This document shows positions 31,318-63,805 of a stretch of 64,000 bases of DNA, piece by piece. Both the position numbers and the translations under genes were made by a program. The notes under the pieces are model-generated. The model ran no database searches. It was not told where the DNA came from and saw nothing but the letters and a program-made list of their open reading frames with translations. Every line of letters starts with the position of its first letter. Position 1 is the stretch's first letter. Location: the IMG/VR virus record IMGVR_UViG_3300047472_000309, positions 246,655-310,654 of that record, one strand, 5' to 3'.

Positions 31318-31374
31318 AAAAAAAAAGAGGACAGCATAATCGCCCTCCCCATTATGGGGAGGGCTTATGCCGTC
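31318..31374. terminator. Bidirectional terminator; T9 tract on the minus strand
   Basis: GCCCTCCCCA-TTA-TGGGGAGGGC flanked by GCATAA and TTATGCCG; A9 at 31318-31326. Confidence 0.75.
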
Positions 31375-41618: not shown

Positions 41619-41820
41619 GCGGTGCTCCAGAAACCCTGTAAGAAATTACTTGCGGTCGCCATGCTGTAGCTAACATGTTCGCAATCAGGCGATTACGTCA
41701 TCGGAAGCTACAGTCCTCTGTGAAATCGAACCACACAACGGGGTCGTTCTTTTCGAGGATAGTCAGATGATTGAGCTATCCGATAGCACTTAACATTTAA
41801 AACGGTATTTGGGGTTTAGC

Positions 41821-42384
41821 ATGACGAAGAAGAGTCAGGGTCGGCTGATGCGCGACGCGATCAAGAAGGACGCGAAGGAAGAGCTCAACCAGAATCGCAA
41901 CTGGGACGAGCTGCAAATGCGTTATCGCGAATGCCGCGACCTGCTGTTGATGCATCTGGCCGTGGGGGAAATCCTCCAGCGCCCGGACATCCAGGGGGAG
42001 ATTTCCAAGCAAGAAGCGCAGACGGTGATCAGCAACGTTCAGCTCCTCACCAAGGACTTGAACGAGCGCGCTCAAGAGCTCACGATGATCTACGGCACGC
42101 ACTCGGATAAGTTCGGCGGGTGCGACGAGAACGACATCATGCTCTCGTTTGAGATCATGGAGAAGTACACCGCATGGCTTTCGCTCATGCAAGCGAACGT
42201 GCAACCGACGCTCGCGCACATCATGGAAATCACGAGCGAAGTCGAAAAACGCGTGATCGCCAAGGCCGCGGTGCTCGATCCGAATGTCATTACGGACGTC
42301 GAAGTGACCGAGTCGAGTAAGCACAGCGACACGCTTGCCGCCGGGATTGCCGCGGCAGACAAGACCAACCCGAAGGCGGAGTAA
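41821..42384 (+). CDS. Hypothetical coiled-coil protein
   Basis: Start MTKKSQ; first gene of the plus-strand operon. Confidence 0.65.
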   Translation: MTKKSQGRLMRDAIKKDAKEELNQNRNWDELQMRYRECRDLLLMHLAVGEILQRPDIQGEISKQEAQTVISNVQLLTKDLNERAQELTMIYGTHSDKFGGCDENDIMLSFEIMEKYTAWLSLMQANVQPTLAHIMEITSEVEKRVIAKAAVLDPNVITDVEVTESSKHSDTLAAGIAAADKTNPKAE

Positions 42385-42387
42385 ACG

Positions 42388-44040
42388 ATGGAAGGTCAAG
42401 AGAACAGCAATATTCATACGCCGTCAGTGACCACTGCGGCGGACGTACCGCCCGAACTGCGTACACCTACGACGGCAGTTGACCCGGTAGTCGATCCCGT
42501 GGTCGAACCGGCGTCGATCCAGCCGCCTGCACCGGACGCCTCGGAAGGCGTACACGAAGTGCTGGGTGGGCTGCCTGAAGATACGCTGGGCGATGCGCCG
42601 GTGGCATCGCAGGAAGACAGTGAACTGAAGGTCGAAGAAACCCCCAAGCGCTTGCCGCAAACCGACACGACGACCGTCAAGCAAGAGCAGGCCGTGTTCA
42701 TTCCGCTGGGTGTGGCGTTCGATTCGAACGGCATCACGCTGGCTGTGCCCGGTGCGCGTGAAGACGAGCTGCAAGAAGCGCTCGCCAAGATGCCCAACAC
42801 CGATCTGGGTGCGACGGCCGAAGGGCGCGAATGGATTGCTGTGGCCCAAGCAGGCTACCGGAATGCCACGCCGCGCAAGATGCTCACCGACATCGACGTG
42901 CGCGAAGGCGCGCTGTGGGAACAAGCGGTCAAGTCCGAGCGCGGTGGCATTCAGGCTTCGCGTCCCAAGCAAGCTGATACGGCAGGCGTCAGTCTGCGCG
43001 GTGAAGCCGGTGTGCTGGCCGTGCGTCAAGAAGTGGGTCTGGGTGGCATCATCCGCATTCCGCTGTGGCACTCCGGTTTTCACATTACGCTGAAGACACC
43101 GGGCGATGCGGCCATCCTGGAGCTGGAGCGTCGCATTACCGACGAGAAGGTACTGCTCGGTCGCATGACCAACGGCATGCTCTTTTCCAATACGTCGGTG
43201 TTCATTGCCGAGTACCTGGTCGAATTCGCCATCCGCCATCTGTACGACACGTCGCTGCGTAACAAGGAGAACATCTTCTCCAAGATCGTCTCGCACGACA
43301 TCCAGCATCTGGCGTGGGGCCTGGCCACCGCAATCTGGCCAACGGGCTTTCAGTACGTGCGCTCGGTGCTGGGTGAAACCGACGCGCAGAACAAGGTGGT
43401 GAAGGACAAGATCGCCATCGGCAAGCTGCAGTTCACCGATACGTCGCAACTGTCGAAGTGGCAGATCAACCACATGACCTCGGTGACGACCGGCTCGATG
43501 ACGGACGACTCGATCAAGAAGTACCGCGAGGAGTTCCTGAATCAGACACCGCGTAAGGTGCAAGTCACCGATAAGGTCGCGATCACGCTGAAGGTACCGA
43601 CGCTTGCCGAGCATATCGCCTCGGGCCAGAAGTGGGTCAACGGGATCGTCGTGATGACGGACCAGGTGTTTGGCATGGAGCAAGATGTCGATGAGCGTAA
43701 CCGCTTTATCTACGAACAGGGCCAAGCCACCTACATGCGTCAGTACGGGCACTGGATCGAATCGATCGAGCTCTCGAACGGCGCGATTGTGGAAGACCCG
43801 GAAACCATCGACCAGACGATCGACGCGCTCTCCGCTGACGACACGATTCGCAACAAGTTCGTGGATGCAGTGGTGAAGTACATCGAAGATACCACGGTCT
43901 CGATGATCGCCGTGCCGACGGTGGCCGCCAGCGAAGAACAGAAGTATCCGCGCTGGCCGCGGTTGTTGCCGATTGATGCGATGGCAACTTTTTTTACCCT
44001 ACTCGACCAGAAGGTCTCGCAGATCCGGGCGCGCAGCTAG
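42388..44040 (+). CDS. Conserved protein (phiKZ gp77-like); putative tail/baseplate assembly chaperone (G-like)
   Basis: 550 aa; IRIPLWHSGFHITLK; ends shortly after PIDAMATFF, which is encoded over a T7 run. Confidence 0.65.
   Translation: MEGQENSNIHTPSVTTAADVPPELRTPTTAVDPVVDPVVEPASIQPPAPDASEGVHEVLGGLPEDTLGDAPVASQEDSELKVEETPKRLPQTDTTTVKQEQAVFIPLGVAFDSNGITLAVPGAREDELQEALAKMPNTDLGATAEGREWIAVAQAGYRNATPRKMLTDIDVREGALWEQAVKSERGGIQASRPKQADTAGVSLRGEAGVLAVRQEVGLGGIIRIPLWHSGFHITLKTPGDAAILELERRITDEKVLLGRMTNGMLFSNTSVFIAEYLVEFAIRHLYDTSLRNKENIFSKIVSHDIQHLAWGLATAIWPTGFQYVRSVLGETDAQNKVVKDKIAIGKLQFTDTSQLSKWQINHMTSVTTGSMTDDSIKKYREEFLNQTPRKVQVTDKVAITLKVPTLAEHIASGQKWVNGIVVMTDQVFGMEQDVDERNRFIYEQGQATYMRQYGHWIESIELSNGAIVEDPETIDQTIDALSADDTIRNKFVDAVVKYIEDTTVSMIAVPTVAASEEQKYPRWPRLLPIDAMATFFTLLDQKVSQIRARS
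43989..43995 (+). other. Candidate -1 programmed ribosomal frameshift site T TTT TTT
   Basis: Slippery heptamer in the correct phase, joining 42388..44040 to the open -1 frame 43977..44504. Confidence 0.6.
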
Positions 44041-44504
44041 TTGCAAAACACGTCGGTCACCCATTCTTTGGCGAGCATGTCGATGTAGTCGCGAAGCTAA
44101 GCGAACTCATTGCCACCGCGCCCAAGATGTGTGTGACCGACACGCGACAGCTGTTGCTGCACCGCTACGAGACGGACTTTGGGATTTACAATCACGACAT
44201 CTCTGATTTCGAGAAGAATCCCTTAGCCCTTATCCGGATGCATTCACGTGAGGATTCATACACGGGTAGTCAACTGGCCGAGCGCATCAGGCAATATCAC
44301 GATCGACACGTGTGGGAAGTGACGCACGATCCGCTCCATGTCTTTCTGAACTATCCGCGCCACATGGTGCTGGACATTCTGGAGCTTGCGGACAAGGCGT
44401 TGCGGGATAAGACCGCAGCACTGGTGAAGGAAGGCAAGGCCCTAGAGGATCGGGTTGCCGGGCTGGCATCTCAGAACGGCGGCATGATTCCACCACCGCA
44501 CTAA
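43995..44504 (+). CDS. Frameshift extension (GT-like) of the upstream gene; the ORF track calls only 44127..44504
   Basis: Frame open from 43977; ATG 44127 lacks an SD; ends with a helical domain (FLNYPRHMVLDILE). Confidence 0.6.
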   Translation, partial: YPTRPEGLADPGAQLVAKHVGHPFFGEHVDVVAKLSELIATAPKMCVTDTRQLLLHRYETDFGIYNHDISDFEKNPLALIRMHSREDSYTGSQLAERIRQYHDRHVWEVTHDPLHVFLNYPRHMVLDILELADKALRDKTAALVKEGKALEDRVAGLASQNGGMIPPPH

Positions 44505-44516
44505 CCGGGGCCGTCA

Positions 44517-44969
44517 ATGATCATTTACGATGAACCGCGAAACATCTTTGAAGTAACGGAGCAAACGCTCGTTAATCCCGTTAACACGCAAGGTGTGATG
44601 GGCGCTGGCTTAGCATTGGCTTTTCGCAGTACCTTTCCGGGTCTGTTTGAAGAGTATCGCGAGGCGTGCCAGCAAGAGGTGTTTACGCGGCGAGGTTTCT
44701 TCGTGTATGACGTTGACGCTTCGCGCAAGGTGTTGTGTTTGCCGACTAAGCGAGAATGGCGTCATCCTTCCAGACTGGAATGGATTGAAGAAGGTCTTTG
44801 GTATCTATCGAGAGAGTATGAGAACTACGGGATTACCTCACTGGCGATTCCCGAGGTAGGCTGCGGGCGAGGTCAGTTAGGTTGGGCGGATGTGCGCCCA
44901 CTGATCTATCAGTACCTGGACCCTATCGCGTTACCAGTGGGGATTTGTTTAAGCCCCTTTGCAGTCTAA
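44517..44969 (+). CDS. Macrodomain ADP-ribosylhydrolase (DarG/TARG1-like)
   Basis: VNPVNTQGVMGAGLA, LPTKREWR, LAIPEVGCGRGQLGW. Confidence 0.85.
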   Translation: MIIYDEPRNIFEVTEQTLVNPVNTQGVMGAGLALAFRSTFPGLFEEYREACQQEVFTRRGFFVYDVDASRKVLCLPTKREWRHPSRLEWIEEGLWYLSREYENYGITSLAIPEVGCGRGQLGWADVRPLIYQYLDPIALPVGICLSPFAV

Positions 44970-44985
44970 CTGACTGGGAACGACG

Positions 44986-45444
44986 ATGATCATCTACGAA
45001 GCAGAGCGCGAACAGTTACGTGCAGAAGAGCAGGCCCTTCTCACGCCCATCAATATCGACGCCGTCGGAGGCGGGGGTTTGCCTGCGGCGTTTCGCTATG
45101 GCTTTCCCGGCCTCTTTAAAGCGTATTGCTGGGCCATGAAAAAGGGCATCTTCGAAAACGATAGCGTATTTGTCTACGATGTATCGGACGTACGCAAGAT
45201 CGTCTGCATGCCGATGAAGCAGCACCCTCGCTACAGTGCCGAAGAGAAGCTCGAGTATCTTGAAGAAAGCCTGATGGTAGTGGCCACCAGCTACCATCAA
45301 CATGGCATCTCGTCGATGGCGATCAACGAAATCGGTTACGGTGACGTGGATCTGCCCTGGGACAAGGTGAGGCCGATCATCCAGCGCTGTTTTGGACCGA
45401 TCGATTTACCGGTGGGGATTTATCGGGGAGTAGTACCTGTGTAA
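44986..45444 (+). CDS. Divergent macrodomain paralog
   Basis: Collinear with the preceding gene (MIIY, FPGLF, FVYDV, PIxLPVGI) but with altered motifs. Confidence 0.75.
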   Translation: MIIYEAEREQLRAEEQALLTPINIDAVGGGGLPAAFRYGFPGLFKAYCWAMKKGIFENDSVFVYDVSDVRKIVCMPMKQHPRYSAEEKLEYLEESLMVVATSYHQHGISSMAINEIGYGDVDLPWDKVRPIIQRCFGPIDLPVGIYRGVVPV

Positions 45445-45694: not shown

Positions 45695-45755
45695 AAAAAA
45701 AAAAAGAGGTACGGGGTCATAGGCGCGCTCCCTAGGGAGCGCGCTCTATGCCGTC
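45695..45755. terminator. Bidirectional terminator; T11 tract on the minus strand
   Basis: Palindrome GCGCGCTCCCTAGGGAGCGCGC flanked by GTCATAG and CTATGCCG; A11 at 45695-45705. Confidence 0.75.
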
Positions 45756-55045: not shown

Positions 55046-55100
55046 AAAAAAAGAAGATCGGTAAACAGCAGAGGGCCGAAGCCCTCTGCTGCTATGCCGT
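55046..55100. terminator. Bidirectional terminator
   Basis: CAGCAGAGGGC-CGAA-GCCCTCTGCTG followed by CTATGCCG on the plus strand; A7 at 55046-55052. Confidence 0.75.
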
Positions 55101-63750: not shown

Positions 63751-63805
63751 AAAAAAAGAGCCGGGGGATAAAAACCCCCTCGACCACCGTCAGGTAGTCG
63801 AGAGG
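63751..63805 (-). terminator. Hairpin(s) plus a delayed T tract
   Basis: CTCGACTACC-TGAC-GGTGGTCGAG, then ...GGCTCTTTTTTT. Confidence 0.6.

Follow-up and report, generated by a model that had tools for sequence, protein, structure and literature searches.

A run of seven T's near the 3' end of the gp77-like gene of phiKZ-like jumbo phages is best explained as a programmed -1 ribosomal frameshift site, which would fuse the 550-a.a. gp77 homolog, a likely baseplate-assembly helper, to the small "gene" downstream and thereby yield a 705-a.a. protein (probability roughly 0.68). The slippery heptamer is kept in 78 of 83 distinct homologous contexts, but the site is not annotated in any of the nine isolate records that we opened, and literature searches for phiKZ, gp77 and gp76.4 in connection with frameshifting or slippage found no report of the recoding event; the hits for "gp77" refer to the numbering of other phages.

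A T7 run and an open -1 frame at the end of the gp77 homolog

We analyzed a 64,000-nt stretch of the IMG/VR virus record IMGVR_UViG_3300047472_000309 (positions 246,655 to 310,654; hereafter, the window), in which all of the features described below lie on the plus strand. The first-pass annotation of this sequence had pointed to a T7 run in slippery phase, an open -1 frame lacking early start codons and a small downstream hairpin, and every one of these items is present in the sequence. The ORF at 42388-44040, the phiKZ gp77 homolog (550 a.a., phrog_4585), reads ACT TTT TTT ACC, with the T7 run at 43989-43995 in the X XXY YYZ phase, so that the P-site and A-site Phe codons of the heptamer T TTT TTT encode F535 and F536. 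A TGA at 43974-43976 closes the -1 frame just upstream and sets the upstream limit of the region where the frame change can happen; in many homologs, a -1-frame stop lies 0-12 nt before the run. The -1 frame is then open from 43977 to 44504, and its first ATG/GTG/TTG is the ATG at 44127, after 150 nt without a start, which is not preceded by a purine-rich Shine-Dalgarno sequence. Slippage at the heptamer would produce the junction ...ATFF-YPTRPEGLADPGAQLVAKHVGHPFFG and a fusion of 536 + 169 = 705 a.a.

The two frames overlap at 43995-44040, where the 0 frame encodes the conserved C-terminal helix end TLLDQKVSQIRARS and terminates at the TAG at 44038-44040, whereas the -1 frame encodes a poorly conserved Pro/Gly/Asp/Glu-rich linker, YPTRPEGLADPGAQ (linker pLDDT 51-63). 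The following stretch, 44041-44126, is coding in the -1 frame but has no start codon; it holds the conserved motif HVGHPFFG (44049-44072) and the first helix of the extension domain, and the start-less stretch includes the peptide HVGHPFFGEHVDVVAK. The remainder, 44127-44504, is the 125-a.a. ORF that a gene caller would report (phrog_12109), and the PHROG match of this small ORF starts 27 residues before the ATG at 44127. In our reading, this ORF is the C-terminal part of an extension that as a whole spans 43995-44504 (169 a.a.).

Within the window, this is the only T run of 7 or more in 64 kb and the only homopolymer of 7 or more inside a crude set of ORFs of 150 a.a. or more, as the four A runs of 7 or more lie between those ORFs. 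It is also the only TTT-TTT among 34 Phe-Phe pairs, and the preceding ACT makes up 8% of Thr codons. These features alone would be only mildly unusual, since an open frame of 50 codons without a start has roughly a 9% chance, and it is the comparative data that make the arrangement significant.

The slippery heptamer and the -1 frame are conserved in homologs

To address whether the arrangement is maintained, we collected 83 distinct homologous contexts, comprising 80 IMG/VR loci plus FLC9 (the closest isolate), phiKZ, 201phi2-1, Goslar, AgentSmith and DT01 (RP12 is also among the IMG/VR loci). The contexts fall into 55 clusters at 50% identity, with GC contents of 30-60% and hosts from Pseudomonas to Bacillus. 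A search for the gp77 homolog returned 194 phage records, all phiKZ-like. Loss of the slippery run, or the use of TTC codons for the Phe-Phe pair, had been named in advance as an outcome that would count against recoding, but 78 of the 83 contexts keep an in-phase T/G TTT TTN heptamer at the same Phe-Phe position: T TTT TTT in 53, T TTT TTC in 17, G TTT TTT in 5, T TTT TTA in 2 and T TTT TTG in 1. The first Phe codon is TTT in 82/83, against 29.0 expected from each gene's own codon usage, and the preceding third base is T in 77/83, against 21.1 expected, although these comparisons overstate the significance somewhat because the loci are not phylogenetically independent. The preference for TTT and a preceding T is kept even in 52 loci whose own genes prefer TTC. 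Of the 55 clusters, 54 keep an intact heptamer. In addition, SPN3US and Asesino, which were examined separately and whose longer homologs are extended at the N-terminus, carry GTT TTT TTC with an open -1 frame and are still frameshifted.

The -1 frame is open from the run to the end of the downstream gene in all 83 contexts, whereas the first canonical start lies anywhere from -40 to +413 nt relative to the 0-frame stop. Protein-level conservation of 43995-44126 and independent initiation at 44127 had likewise been specified beforehand as deciding points, and both turned out in favor of the extension. The motif HVxxPxFG lies upstream of the first start in about 70 of 83 contexts by eye, as does a first helix in most loci, and three loci of the sample (L039, L065 and L066) have no start for more than 120 codons. 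The start-less stretch evolves like coding sequence, with third-position-biased divergence (100/62/164 differences by codon position over 374 such codons in 20 pairs; a chi-square calculated by hand gives about 49). The ATG at 44127 is not conserved and is ATT in FLC9, and no start, canonical or near-cognate, lies between the 0-frame stop and the conserved HV motif in the window or in FLC9. Among the best 150 of 247 hits to the extension at E <= 0.001, the called N-termini scatter and none is a fused protein of about 700 a.a., and no naturally fused single-ORF version was found in the 83 loci.

Five contexts have a decayed run (T5, or T6 out of phase). In the one clade where the run has decayed (loci L043, L045 and L047), an ATG appears inside the motif, which sister loci with an intact T7 lack. 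L083 and L086, which are among the five decayed contexts, also lack a conserved start. Moreover, in the five contexts with G TTT TTT, the P-site tRNA would re-pair imperfectly.

RNA signals around the heptamer

We next evaluated whether stimulatory elements accompany the heptamer, which are common but not obligatory at sites of this type. The GACC-AGAA-GGTC hairpin pointed out initially exists at 44005-44016, 9 nt after the heptamer, but it is weak and not conserved, and the 80 nt downstream of the run in the window fold no better than shuffles (z = +0.55). Across the family, the downstream sequences are not more structured than shuffles either (median z = -0.48), and an upstream Shine-Dalgarno-like 4-mer occurs in only 6 of 83 contexts.

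On the upstream side, a hairpin of about -8.6 kcal/mol at 43962-43985 abuts the T run, and the consensus scan flagged this hairpin followed by AACTTTTTTT as terminator-like. However, the number of terminator-like hits equaled the shuffle expectation (4 against 3.9). The hairpin, the role of which is unknown, is present in this lineage and in FLC9 but is not enriched across the family, since 18 of 80 loci reach dG <= -4 and the percentiles look like the null. At the RNA level, contigs assembled from three RNA-seq runs of a phiKZ-like phage ran through the site and showed only the unedited T7 with no indel; as contigs drop minor variants, this excludes majority editing but not minority slippage, and the one raw-read run held no phage reads. 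The phage of the window itself was found only in rhizosphere and soil DNA metagenomes.

Predicted structure and relationships of gp77

Residues 1-78 of the gp77 homolog are predicted to be disordered, whereas residues about 90-550 form a confidently modelled alpha/beta body (pLDDT 82.9, pTM 0.80). The first-pass annotation had interpreted the protein as a tail-assembly chaperone of the lambda G/GT and P2 E/E' type, even though no tape-measure gene is adjacent, and had suggested comparing its predicted structure with T4 gp26/gp51 and tail-assembly chaperone folds. Membership of the lambda G/GT or P2 E/E' family is not supported. No Pfam or PHROG chaperone family was hit, no Pfam family matched the window protein or any of 69 homologs, and the protein has 550 a.a. 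rather than about 140 a.a. In addition, the gene does not lie between the tail tube and tape-measure genes; its neighbours are the virion RNA polymerase beta subunit, gp79-like and gp78-like genes, and Macro-domain genes. Sequence and fold searches of the PDB with gp77 found nothing (Foldseek best E 0.17; VIA best Z 5.7), and the same holds for the extension (atlas TM < 0.4).

In contrast, fold and embedding searches link residues about 190-550 to the T4 gp26/gp51 (PF12322, T4_baseplate) baseplate-hub assembly chaperones. BFVD gave at least 12 named baseplate-hub hits at E 1e-4 to 1e-2 with TM by target of 0.45-0.55, AFDB clusters gave similar hits, and in the ESM Atlas 84 of 100 named feature hits carry PF12322. 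These hits are consistent, but the TM values are only 0.45-0.60, both sides are predicted models with no solved structure for comparison, and a search of the Swiss-Prot AFDB did not return T4 gp26 or gp51, so that a shared fold is neither established nor dismissed. The sequence profiles do not confirm the relationship: the PF12322 HMM matched none of 69 homologs at E <= 1, whereas T4 gp26 and gp51 themselves score 216 and 178 bits. In hhalign, the gp77 alignment against T4 gp26, gp51 and a 28-sequence gp26 alignment, including trimmed versions, was not significant, with the sole exception of a suggestive alignment of the C-terminal motif (..VP..CPxCG...FFxLL), in which 40 columns aligned at E 0.0019 but with a probability of only 14%, leaving profile-level homology undecided. 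As indirect evidence on the virion, for which neither a requirement in hub assembly nor absence from the finished particle was assayed, the phiKZ and 201phi2-1 record notes mark gp79, gp80, gp138 and gp139 as virion proteins but not gp77, gp136 or gp135, and the Goslar virion paper does not mention gp81 or gp82. A complex prediction of the gp77 core with the extension gave no answer (score 0.00), which is evidence neither for nor against binding.

Discussion

The interpretation of the first-pass annotation is therefore supported in part: the hidden -1 recoding site and the view of the 125-a.a. ORF as a C-terminal extension hold up, the assignment to the lambda or P2 chaperone family does not, and the broader idea of a tail or baseplate assembly helper is partly borne out. 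In our model, most ribosomes translate the 0 frame and stop at the TAG, giving the 550-a.a. protein, whereas a fraction slip back one base while the two Phe-tRNAs sit on T TTT TTT and then read TAC CCT ... in the -1 frame. The last 14 residues of gp77 would thus be replaced by a flexible linker and a helical domain of about 140 a.a. that ends in a helix of about 40 residues. On this reading, the separately annotated small ORF (gp76.4 in phiKZ, gp135 in 201phi2-1, gp082 in Goslar and gp40 in SPN3US) is in most of these phages the tail of the extension rather than an independent gene. Our analysis shows the site, its conservation at synonymous positions across the family, the open -1 frame, the protein-level conservation upstream of any start codon and the absence of fused genes in the sets searched. 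All of this evidence is comparative and no trans-frame protein has been observed here, and the mechanism and function are inferences: that the slip is ribosomal rather than transcriptional is more likely than not, by about the margin given above for the whole reading; that its efficiency is low and fixes a ratio of short to long form, as in lambda G/GT, is inferred because no conserved stimulatory RNA element accompanies the heptamer; and that gp77 is a non-virion assembly helper related to T4 gp26/gp51, with the extension adding an oligomerisation or partner-binding module, is only somewhat more likely than not.

The alternative that we consider unlikely but do not exclude is transcriptional slippage, in which the phage's own multisubunit RNA polymerase, or that of the host, inserts one extra U on the U7 run in a fraction of transcripts. 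The product would be identical, so that all of the comparative evidence fits equally well, the conserved element is a pure homopolymer of 6-9 T (7 in 48 contexts, 8 in 19 and 9 in 4), no conserved ribosomal stimulator accompanies it, and in the window and FLC9 a hairpin directly abuts the run, an arrangement that stimulates slippage on short runs. However, bacterial RNA polymerases usually need runs of 9 or more, the abutting hairpin occurs in only some lineages, and every intact site satisfies the X XXY YYZ phase, including the T TTT TTC/A/G cases where the run is only 6-7 long. Run lengths over the whole sample (5-9, with a mode of 7) and the RNA contigs described above are compatible with either mechanism and do not decide between them. 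If the frame change were made by the non-canonical phage polymerase stuttering on a run unusually short for this mechanism, which we regard as an unlikely possibility, every phiKZ-like phage would rely on programmed transcriptional slippage to set the ratio of two forms of a baseplate-hub assembly chaperone.

Readings without any recoding fare worse. The downstream domain might be translated by coupled re-initiation or from a non-canonical start near the gp77 stop, with the T run being simply how a conserved Phe-Phe happens to be encoded; indeed, RP12, 201phi2-1 and the loci L009 and L034 have ATG/TTG/GTG overlapping or next to the gp77 stop (overlapping it in RP12, 201phi2-1 and L009, where free downstream protein may also be made), every public annotation inspected treats the two as separate genes, and T4 gp26 also ends in ...FFELL, so Phe-Phe is an old protein motif. 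This view is improbable, since the start positions scatter over 450 nt, and the retention of TTT and the preceding T is unexplained if only the amino acids matter; T4 itself uses TTC TTT there. Least likely of all, the run might be the U-tract of an intrinsic terminator or attenuator, or the arrangement an assembly or homopolymer error or a decaying gene. A terminator 45 nt before the stop would leave the mRNA without a stop codon, and this reading does not explain the start-less but conserved -1 coding, while the recurrence of the same frame arrangement in finished isolate genomes and in 80 independent metagenome contigs rules out sequencing error and pseudogenisation.

If confirmed, every phiKZ-like (Chimalliviridae and AR9-related) jumbo phage would encode an unannotated protein of about 700 a.a. 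in a core gene, and the small ORFs named above would be mis-annotated fragments, so that gene callers and proteomics databases for these therapeutic-candidate phages should include the fusion. It would also extend the logic of two forms from one gene by frameshifting, already known from tail assembly chaperones, to an unrelated and much larger protein family that looks like the T4 gp26/gp51 hub chaperones, which points to convergent evolution of stoichiometry control in tail or baseplate assembly. In addition, it would give a functional handle on a conserved jumbo-phage gene of unknown function, and provide a naturally replicated set of U UUU UUN sites working in hosts from Pseudomonas to Bacillus, useful for studying recoding without a stimulatory structure.

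As in the lambda G/GT and P2 E/E+E' pairs, a -1 slip near the 3' end of an assembly gene would yield a short and a C-terminally extended form that share an N-terminus, as inferred here from the comparative evidence, with a downstream ORF that has no start of its own and no strong stimulatory structure, which implies a low fixed ratio; P2 also slips on a T run (T TTT TTG). The present family has no detected sequence or fold relationship to those chaperones and is confined to phiKZ-like jumbo phages. T4 gene 26 also makes two nested products, 26 and 26', but the second arises from internal initiation rather than recoding, gp77 is more than twice as long, and T4 has TTC TTT with no run and gene 25 starting at TAATG, so there is no frameshift. 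Among the classical U-rich -1 heptamers, HIV-1 gag-pol (U UUU UUA) and T7 gene 10A/10B share the X XXY YYZ type of site with Phe-tRNA re-pairing and a C-terminally extended product, although the retroviral sites rely on a downstream stem-loop or pseudoknot of a kind not conserved here, and U UUU UUA itself occurs in AgentSmith and L009.

A candidate slippery site at the 3' end of the gp77 homolog

The window holds an ORF at 42388-44040 (550 aa) whose 3' end reads ACT TTT TTT ACC, with a T7 run at 43989-43995 in X XXY YYZ phase. The -1 frame has a TGA at 43974-43976 and then stays open to 44504, and its first ATG/GTG/TTG is the ATG at 44127, which is not preceded by a Shine-Dalgarno sequence. 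A -1 slip would give ...ATFF-YPTRPEGLADPGAQLVAKHVGHPFFG... and a 705-aa protein. The observation made in the first-pass annotation therefore held. Within the window (GC 56.6%), the run is the only T run of 7 or more, the only homopolymer of 7 or more inside a crude set of ORFs of 150 aa or more, and the only TTT-TTT among 34 Phe-Phe pairs; ACT makes up 8% of Thr codons. All other homopolymers of 7 or more in the window are A runs, at 31318-31326 (A9), 45695-45705 (A11), 55046-55052 (A7) and 63751-63757 (A7), which lie between the ORFs of this set, several of them between convergent genes, and may be transcription signals of the phage polymerases.

The 550-aa protein is the phiKZ gp77 homolog (phrog_4585), and a tblastn search found it in 194 phage records, all of them phiKZ-like jumbo phages. 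The closest isolate is Burkholderia phage FLC9, at 75% nucleotide identity, and the phage of the window itself was found only in rhizosphere and soil metagenomes. Synteny is conserved, in the order virion RNA polymerase beta subunit (minus strand), a gp79-like gene (minus strand), a gp78-like gene, gp77, and then a small ORF of family phrog_12109. In the window, two tandem paralogous Macro-domain genes (PF01661, 150 and 152 aa; plus strand, 44517-44969 and 44986-45444) follow the extension directly; FLC9 has the same pair, and Goslar has a Macro-domain gene in the same place. Long antisense ORFs of 442 aa (42424-43752, minus strand) and 206 aa (41797-42417, minus strand) overlap gp77 and the gp78-like gene, but they are probably GC-driven artefacts, and FLC9 annotates the plus-strand genes.

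Conservation of the heptamer and the open -1 frame

To address whether homologs keep the run and the open -1 frame, a test proposed together with the initial observation, we collected 80 IMG/VR loci and added FLC9, phiKZ, 201phi2-1, Goslar, AgentSmith (a Bacillus phage) and DT01; RP12 is also present among the IMG/VR loci. This gave 83 distinct contexts, which form 55 clusters at 50% identity of the extension. Every context has a T run at the same Phe-Phe position, 24-57 nt before the 0-frame stop. The in-phase heptamer is T TTT TTT in 53, T TTT TTC in 17, G TTT TTT in 5, T TTT TTA in 2 and T TTT TTG in 1, and five contexts are decayed. The use of TTC codons for the Phe pair had been named in advance as evidence against the site, but the first Phe codon is TTT in 82 of 83, against 29.0 expected from the Phe usage of each gene, and among the 52 loci whose genes prefer TTC elsewhere, 51 still use TTT. 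The preceding third base is T in 77 of 83, against 21.1 expected. The loci are related, so the counts overstate independence. The -1 frame is open from the run to the end of the downstream gene in all 83. In many loci a -1-frame stop lies 0-12 nt before the run, which pins the frame change to the run or to the 40-50 nt after it. The same arrangement was seen in SPN3US gp39/gp40 and Asesino gp56/gp57, which were examined separately.

The start-less stretch evolves as coding sequence

The first sign that the small ORF is not independent came from its PHROG profile, which matches the -1 frame from 27 residues upstream of ATG 44127. In FLC9 the ATG of the window is ATT, and the annotated GTG of FLC9 is AAG in the window; even so, GHPFFG and the flanking residues are conserved upstream of both, with an 18-nt (in-frame) indel. 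Apparent starts come and go even among near-identical phages: around 44085-44093, relatives at 96-98% identity (L016-L018) have GAT GTG GTC where the window has GAT GTA GTC, so that a gene caller starts their small ORF at that GTG, giving a 139-aa protein. In the phiKZ locus (NC_004629; L010, 3815-4036), the annotated gp76.4 starts 73 codons after the gp77 stop, leaving unannotated an open, conserved -1-frame stretch that includes GHILHPNFG, and AgentSmith has a comparable 216-nt gap.

We next evaluated protein-level conservation ahead of ATG 44127, the absence of which had been stated beforehand as a refuting condition. An alignment of the -1-frame translations shows a conserved motif, HVxxPxFG, a few codons after the 0-frame stop, which by eye lies upstream of the first canonical start in about 70 of 83 contexts; in another 15 or so of these, the "first start" is merely the GTG that encodes the conserved Val of the motif. 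Three of the loci (L039, L065 and L066) have no start for more than 120 codons, so essentially the whole domain lacks one. We then took 20 phylogenetically independent pairs and considered only the codons after the 0-frame stop and before any start. These 374 codons differ at codon positions 1/2/3 by 100/62/164, compared with 554/367/1102 in the undisputed downstream part, and the departure from equal thirds is strong (chi-square of about 49, calculated by hand). Inside the overlap, the 0 frame is the conserved one (FFTLLxQ+xxxIxxR, a helix in the predicted model), whereas the -1 frame reads as a variable Pro/Gly/Asp/Glu/Ser-rich linker.

An exhaustive HMMER search with the 169-aa -1-frame piece found 247 proteins at E <= 0.001. 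The 150 of these that were examined are all small, 93-180 aa plus one of 315 aa, and their called N-termini scatter over query residues 1-57. No in-frame fused version appeared among them or in any of the 83 loci, suggesting that making both forms is itself under selection. There are exceptions to the lack of a conserved start. RP12, 201phi2-1 and the loci L009 and L034 have a start overlapping the gp77 stop, which the RP12 relative L070 lacks. In the one clade where the run decayed (IMG/VR loci L043, L045 and L047; GTT TTT TCC, GTT TTT ATC, GTT TTT ACC), an ATG sits inside the conserved HPxFG motif (HP-M-FG), while the sister loci L033 and L046, which keep T7, have Leu or Asn there. This looks like a switch from frameshift to independent initiation, and although it is a single evolutionary event, its direction is what one expects if the run is needed to express the domain. 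Two further loci, L083 and L086, have only CTT TTT ATT (T5) at the site and no conserved start before the SPRFG motif, and expression of the downstream domain there is unexplained, unless a single Phe-tRNA can slip on U UUU.

Stimulatory elements and the RNA-level check

No stimulatory element is conserved. The 4-bp hairpin pointed out in the first-pass annotation is present at 44005-44016, but the 80 nt after the run fold no better than shuffles (z = +0.55). Across the family, downstream folding has a median z of -0.48, with 15 of 83 below -2, and an upstream Shine-Dalgarno-like 4-mer occurs in 6 of 83. A terminator scan flagged a hairpin of about -8.6 kcal/mol at 43962-43985 (plus strand) that abuts the T7 run, so that the two together (43962-43995) look like an intrinsic terminator, but the number of hits equals the shuffle expectation. 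A similar hairpin exists in FLC9 and a few other lineages (the loci L021, L026, L031 and L072), where it could modulate slippage, whereas across 80 contexts abutting hairpins are no more frequent than elsewhere in the same genes. The heptamer, followed by the conserved ACC CTN CTC, is the only shared signal, which fits a low-efficiency slip without a stimulatory structure, as in lambda G/GT.

At the RNA level, three RNA-seq runs of a phiKZ-like phage hold the region as single contigs with the genomic T7 and no indel. Contigs drop minor variants, and the only raw-read run held no phage reads, so slippage in a minority of transcripts is not excluded. Majority-level editing is excluded.

Proposed mechanism for the inferred frame change

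We consider programmed -1 ribosomal frameshifting on U UUU UUN to be the best explanation (probability about 0.68), in which case the products would be a majority 550-aa form and a minority 705-aa form. That some recoding event joins the two frames is very likely, more so than the mechanism itself. The support for both is comparative or predictive: the site, its conservation and the coding character of the start-less stretch are read from the sequences, while the frameshift and its products are inferred, and no trans-frame protein was observed. Transcriptional slippage would give the same protein and is a less likely but possible alternative. Independent initiation is very unlikely, since it cannot explain the synonymous-site conservation or the start-less conserved coding, and least likely of all are a terminator, an artefact or a pseudogene, which are contradicted by the recurrence in finished genomes and by the read-through RNA contigs.

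The interpretation in the first-pass annotation, a hidden -1 frameshift making a G/GT-type tail-chaperone pair, was thus partly supported. In logic the arrangement works like lambda G/GT and P2 E/E+E', but it is not a member of that family, as it fails on sequence, size and gene position. It uses the same heptamer class as HIV-1 gag-pol (U UUU UUA), but without a stimulatory structure. We found no paper describing this recoding, although the literature searched was not exhaustive and a prior description elsewhere cannot be ruled out, and none of the nine isolate records inspected annotates it. Taken together, while -1 recoding of this logic is already established in other phage tail genes, what appears to be unreported is a well-supported, family-wide recoding event in a protein family that appears closest to T4 gp26/gp51.

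Predicted structures of gp77 and the extension

The gp77 homolog models confidently (pLDDT 82.9, pTM 0.80), with a disordered N-terminal 78 residues. It has no relative in the PDB by sequence or fold and no Pfam family. Three independent searches point the same way. Against predicted viral structures, its orthologs are followed by a consistent series of proteins of about 250 aa named baseplate hub subunit, assembly protein, chaperone or catalyst of the T4 type, with E 1e-4 to 1e-2, probability about 1 and TM by target 0.45-0.55. AFDB clusters gave similar "baseplate protein" hits. The ESM Atlas, searched with residues 190-550, gave PF12322 (T4_baseplate) clusters for 84 of 100 named feature hits (score 0.89, 192 of 256 shared features), and TM 0.60 to a 542-aa cluster in which some members carry PF12322.

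T4 gp26 and gp51, comparison with which had been suggested at the outset, are both PF12322 members. T4 gp26 (L097, 2803-3429, minus strand) ends ...CPECGKTHAHVIRGLKEFFELL, which resembles the gp77-family C-terminus CPxCG...FFTLL, and a single-sequence hhalign lines up the C-termini, ..VP..CPxCG...FFxLL, at E 0.0019 but with probability 14%, which leaves homology undecided. On the other hand, the PF12322 HMM matches none of 69 homologs, profile-profile comparison with a gp26 alignment is not significant, and a search of the Swiss-Prot AFDB did not return gp26 or gp51. The functional assignment rests on similarity between predicted structures, with TM about 0.5, and we treat a "gp26/gp51-like hub assembly chaperone" as a lead that is somewhat more likely than not, rather than as established membership. 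T4 itself encodes the Phe-Phe as TTC TTT and has no frameshift, with gene 25 starting at TAATG. T4 gene 26 also has a nested second product, 26'. Record notes mark the neighboring gp79/gp80 (phiKZ) and gp138/gp139 (201phi2-1) as virion proteins, but not gp77, gp136 or gp135, and the Goslar virion paper does not mention gp81 or gp82, both of which are consistent with a non-structural helper.

The extension models at pLDDT 90. It has no informative fold match, the best being generic coiled-coil or zipper helices at Z <= 5.6. In the predicted model, the linker is followed by the HV motif, several short helices and a C-terminal helix of about 40 residues, and starting at ATG 44127 would cut off the conserved motif and the first helix.
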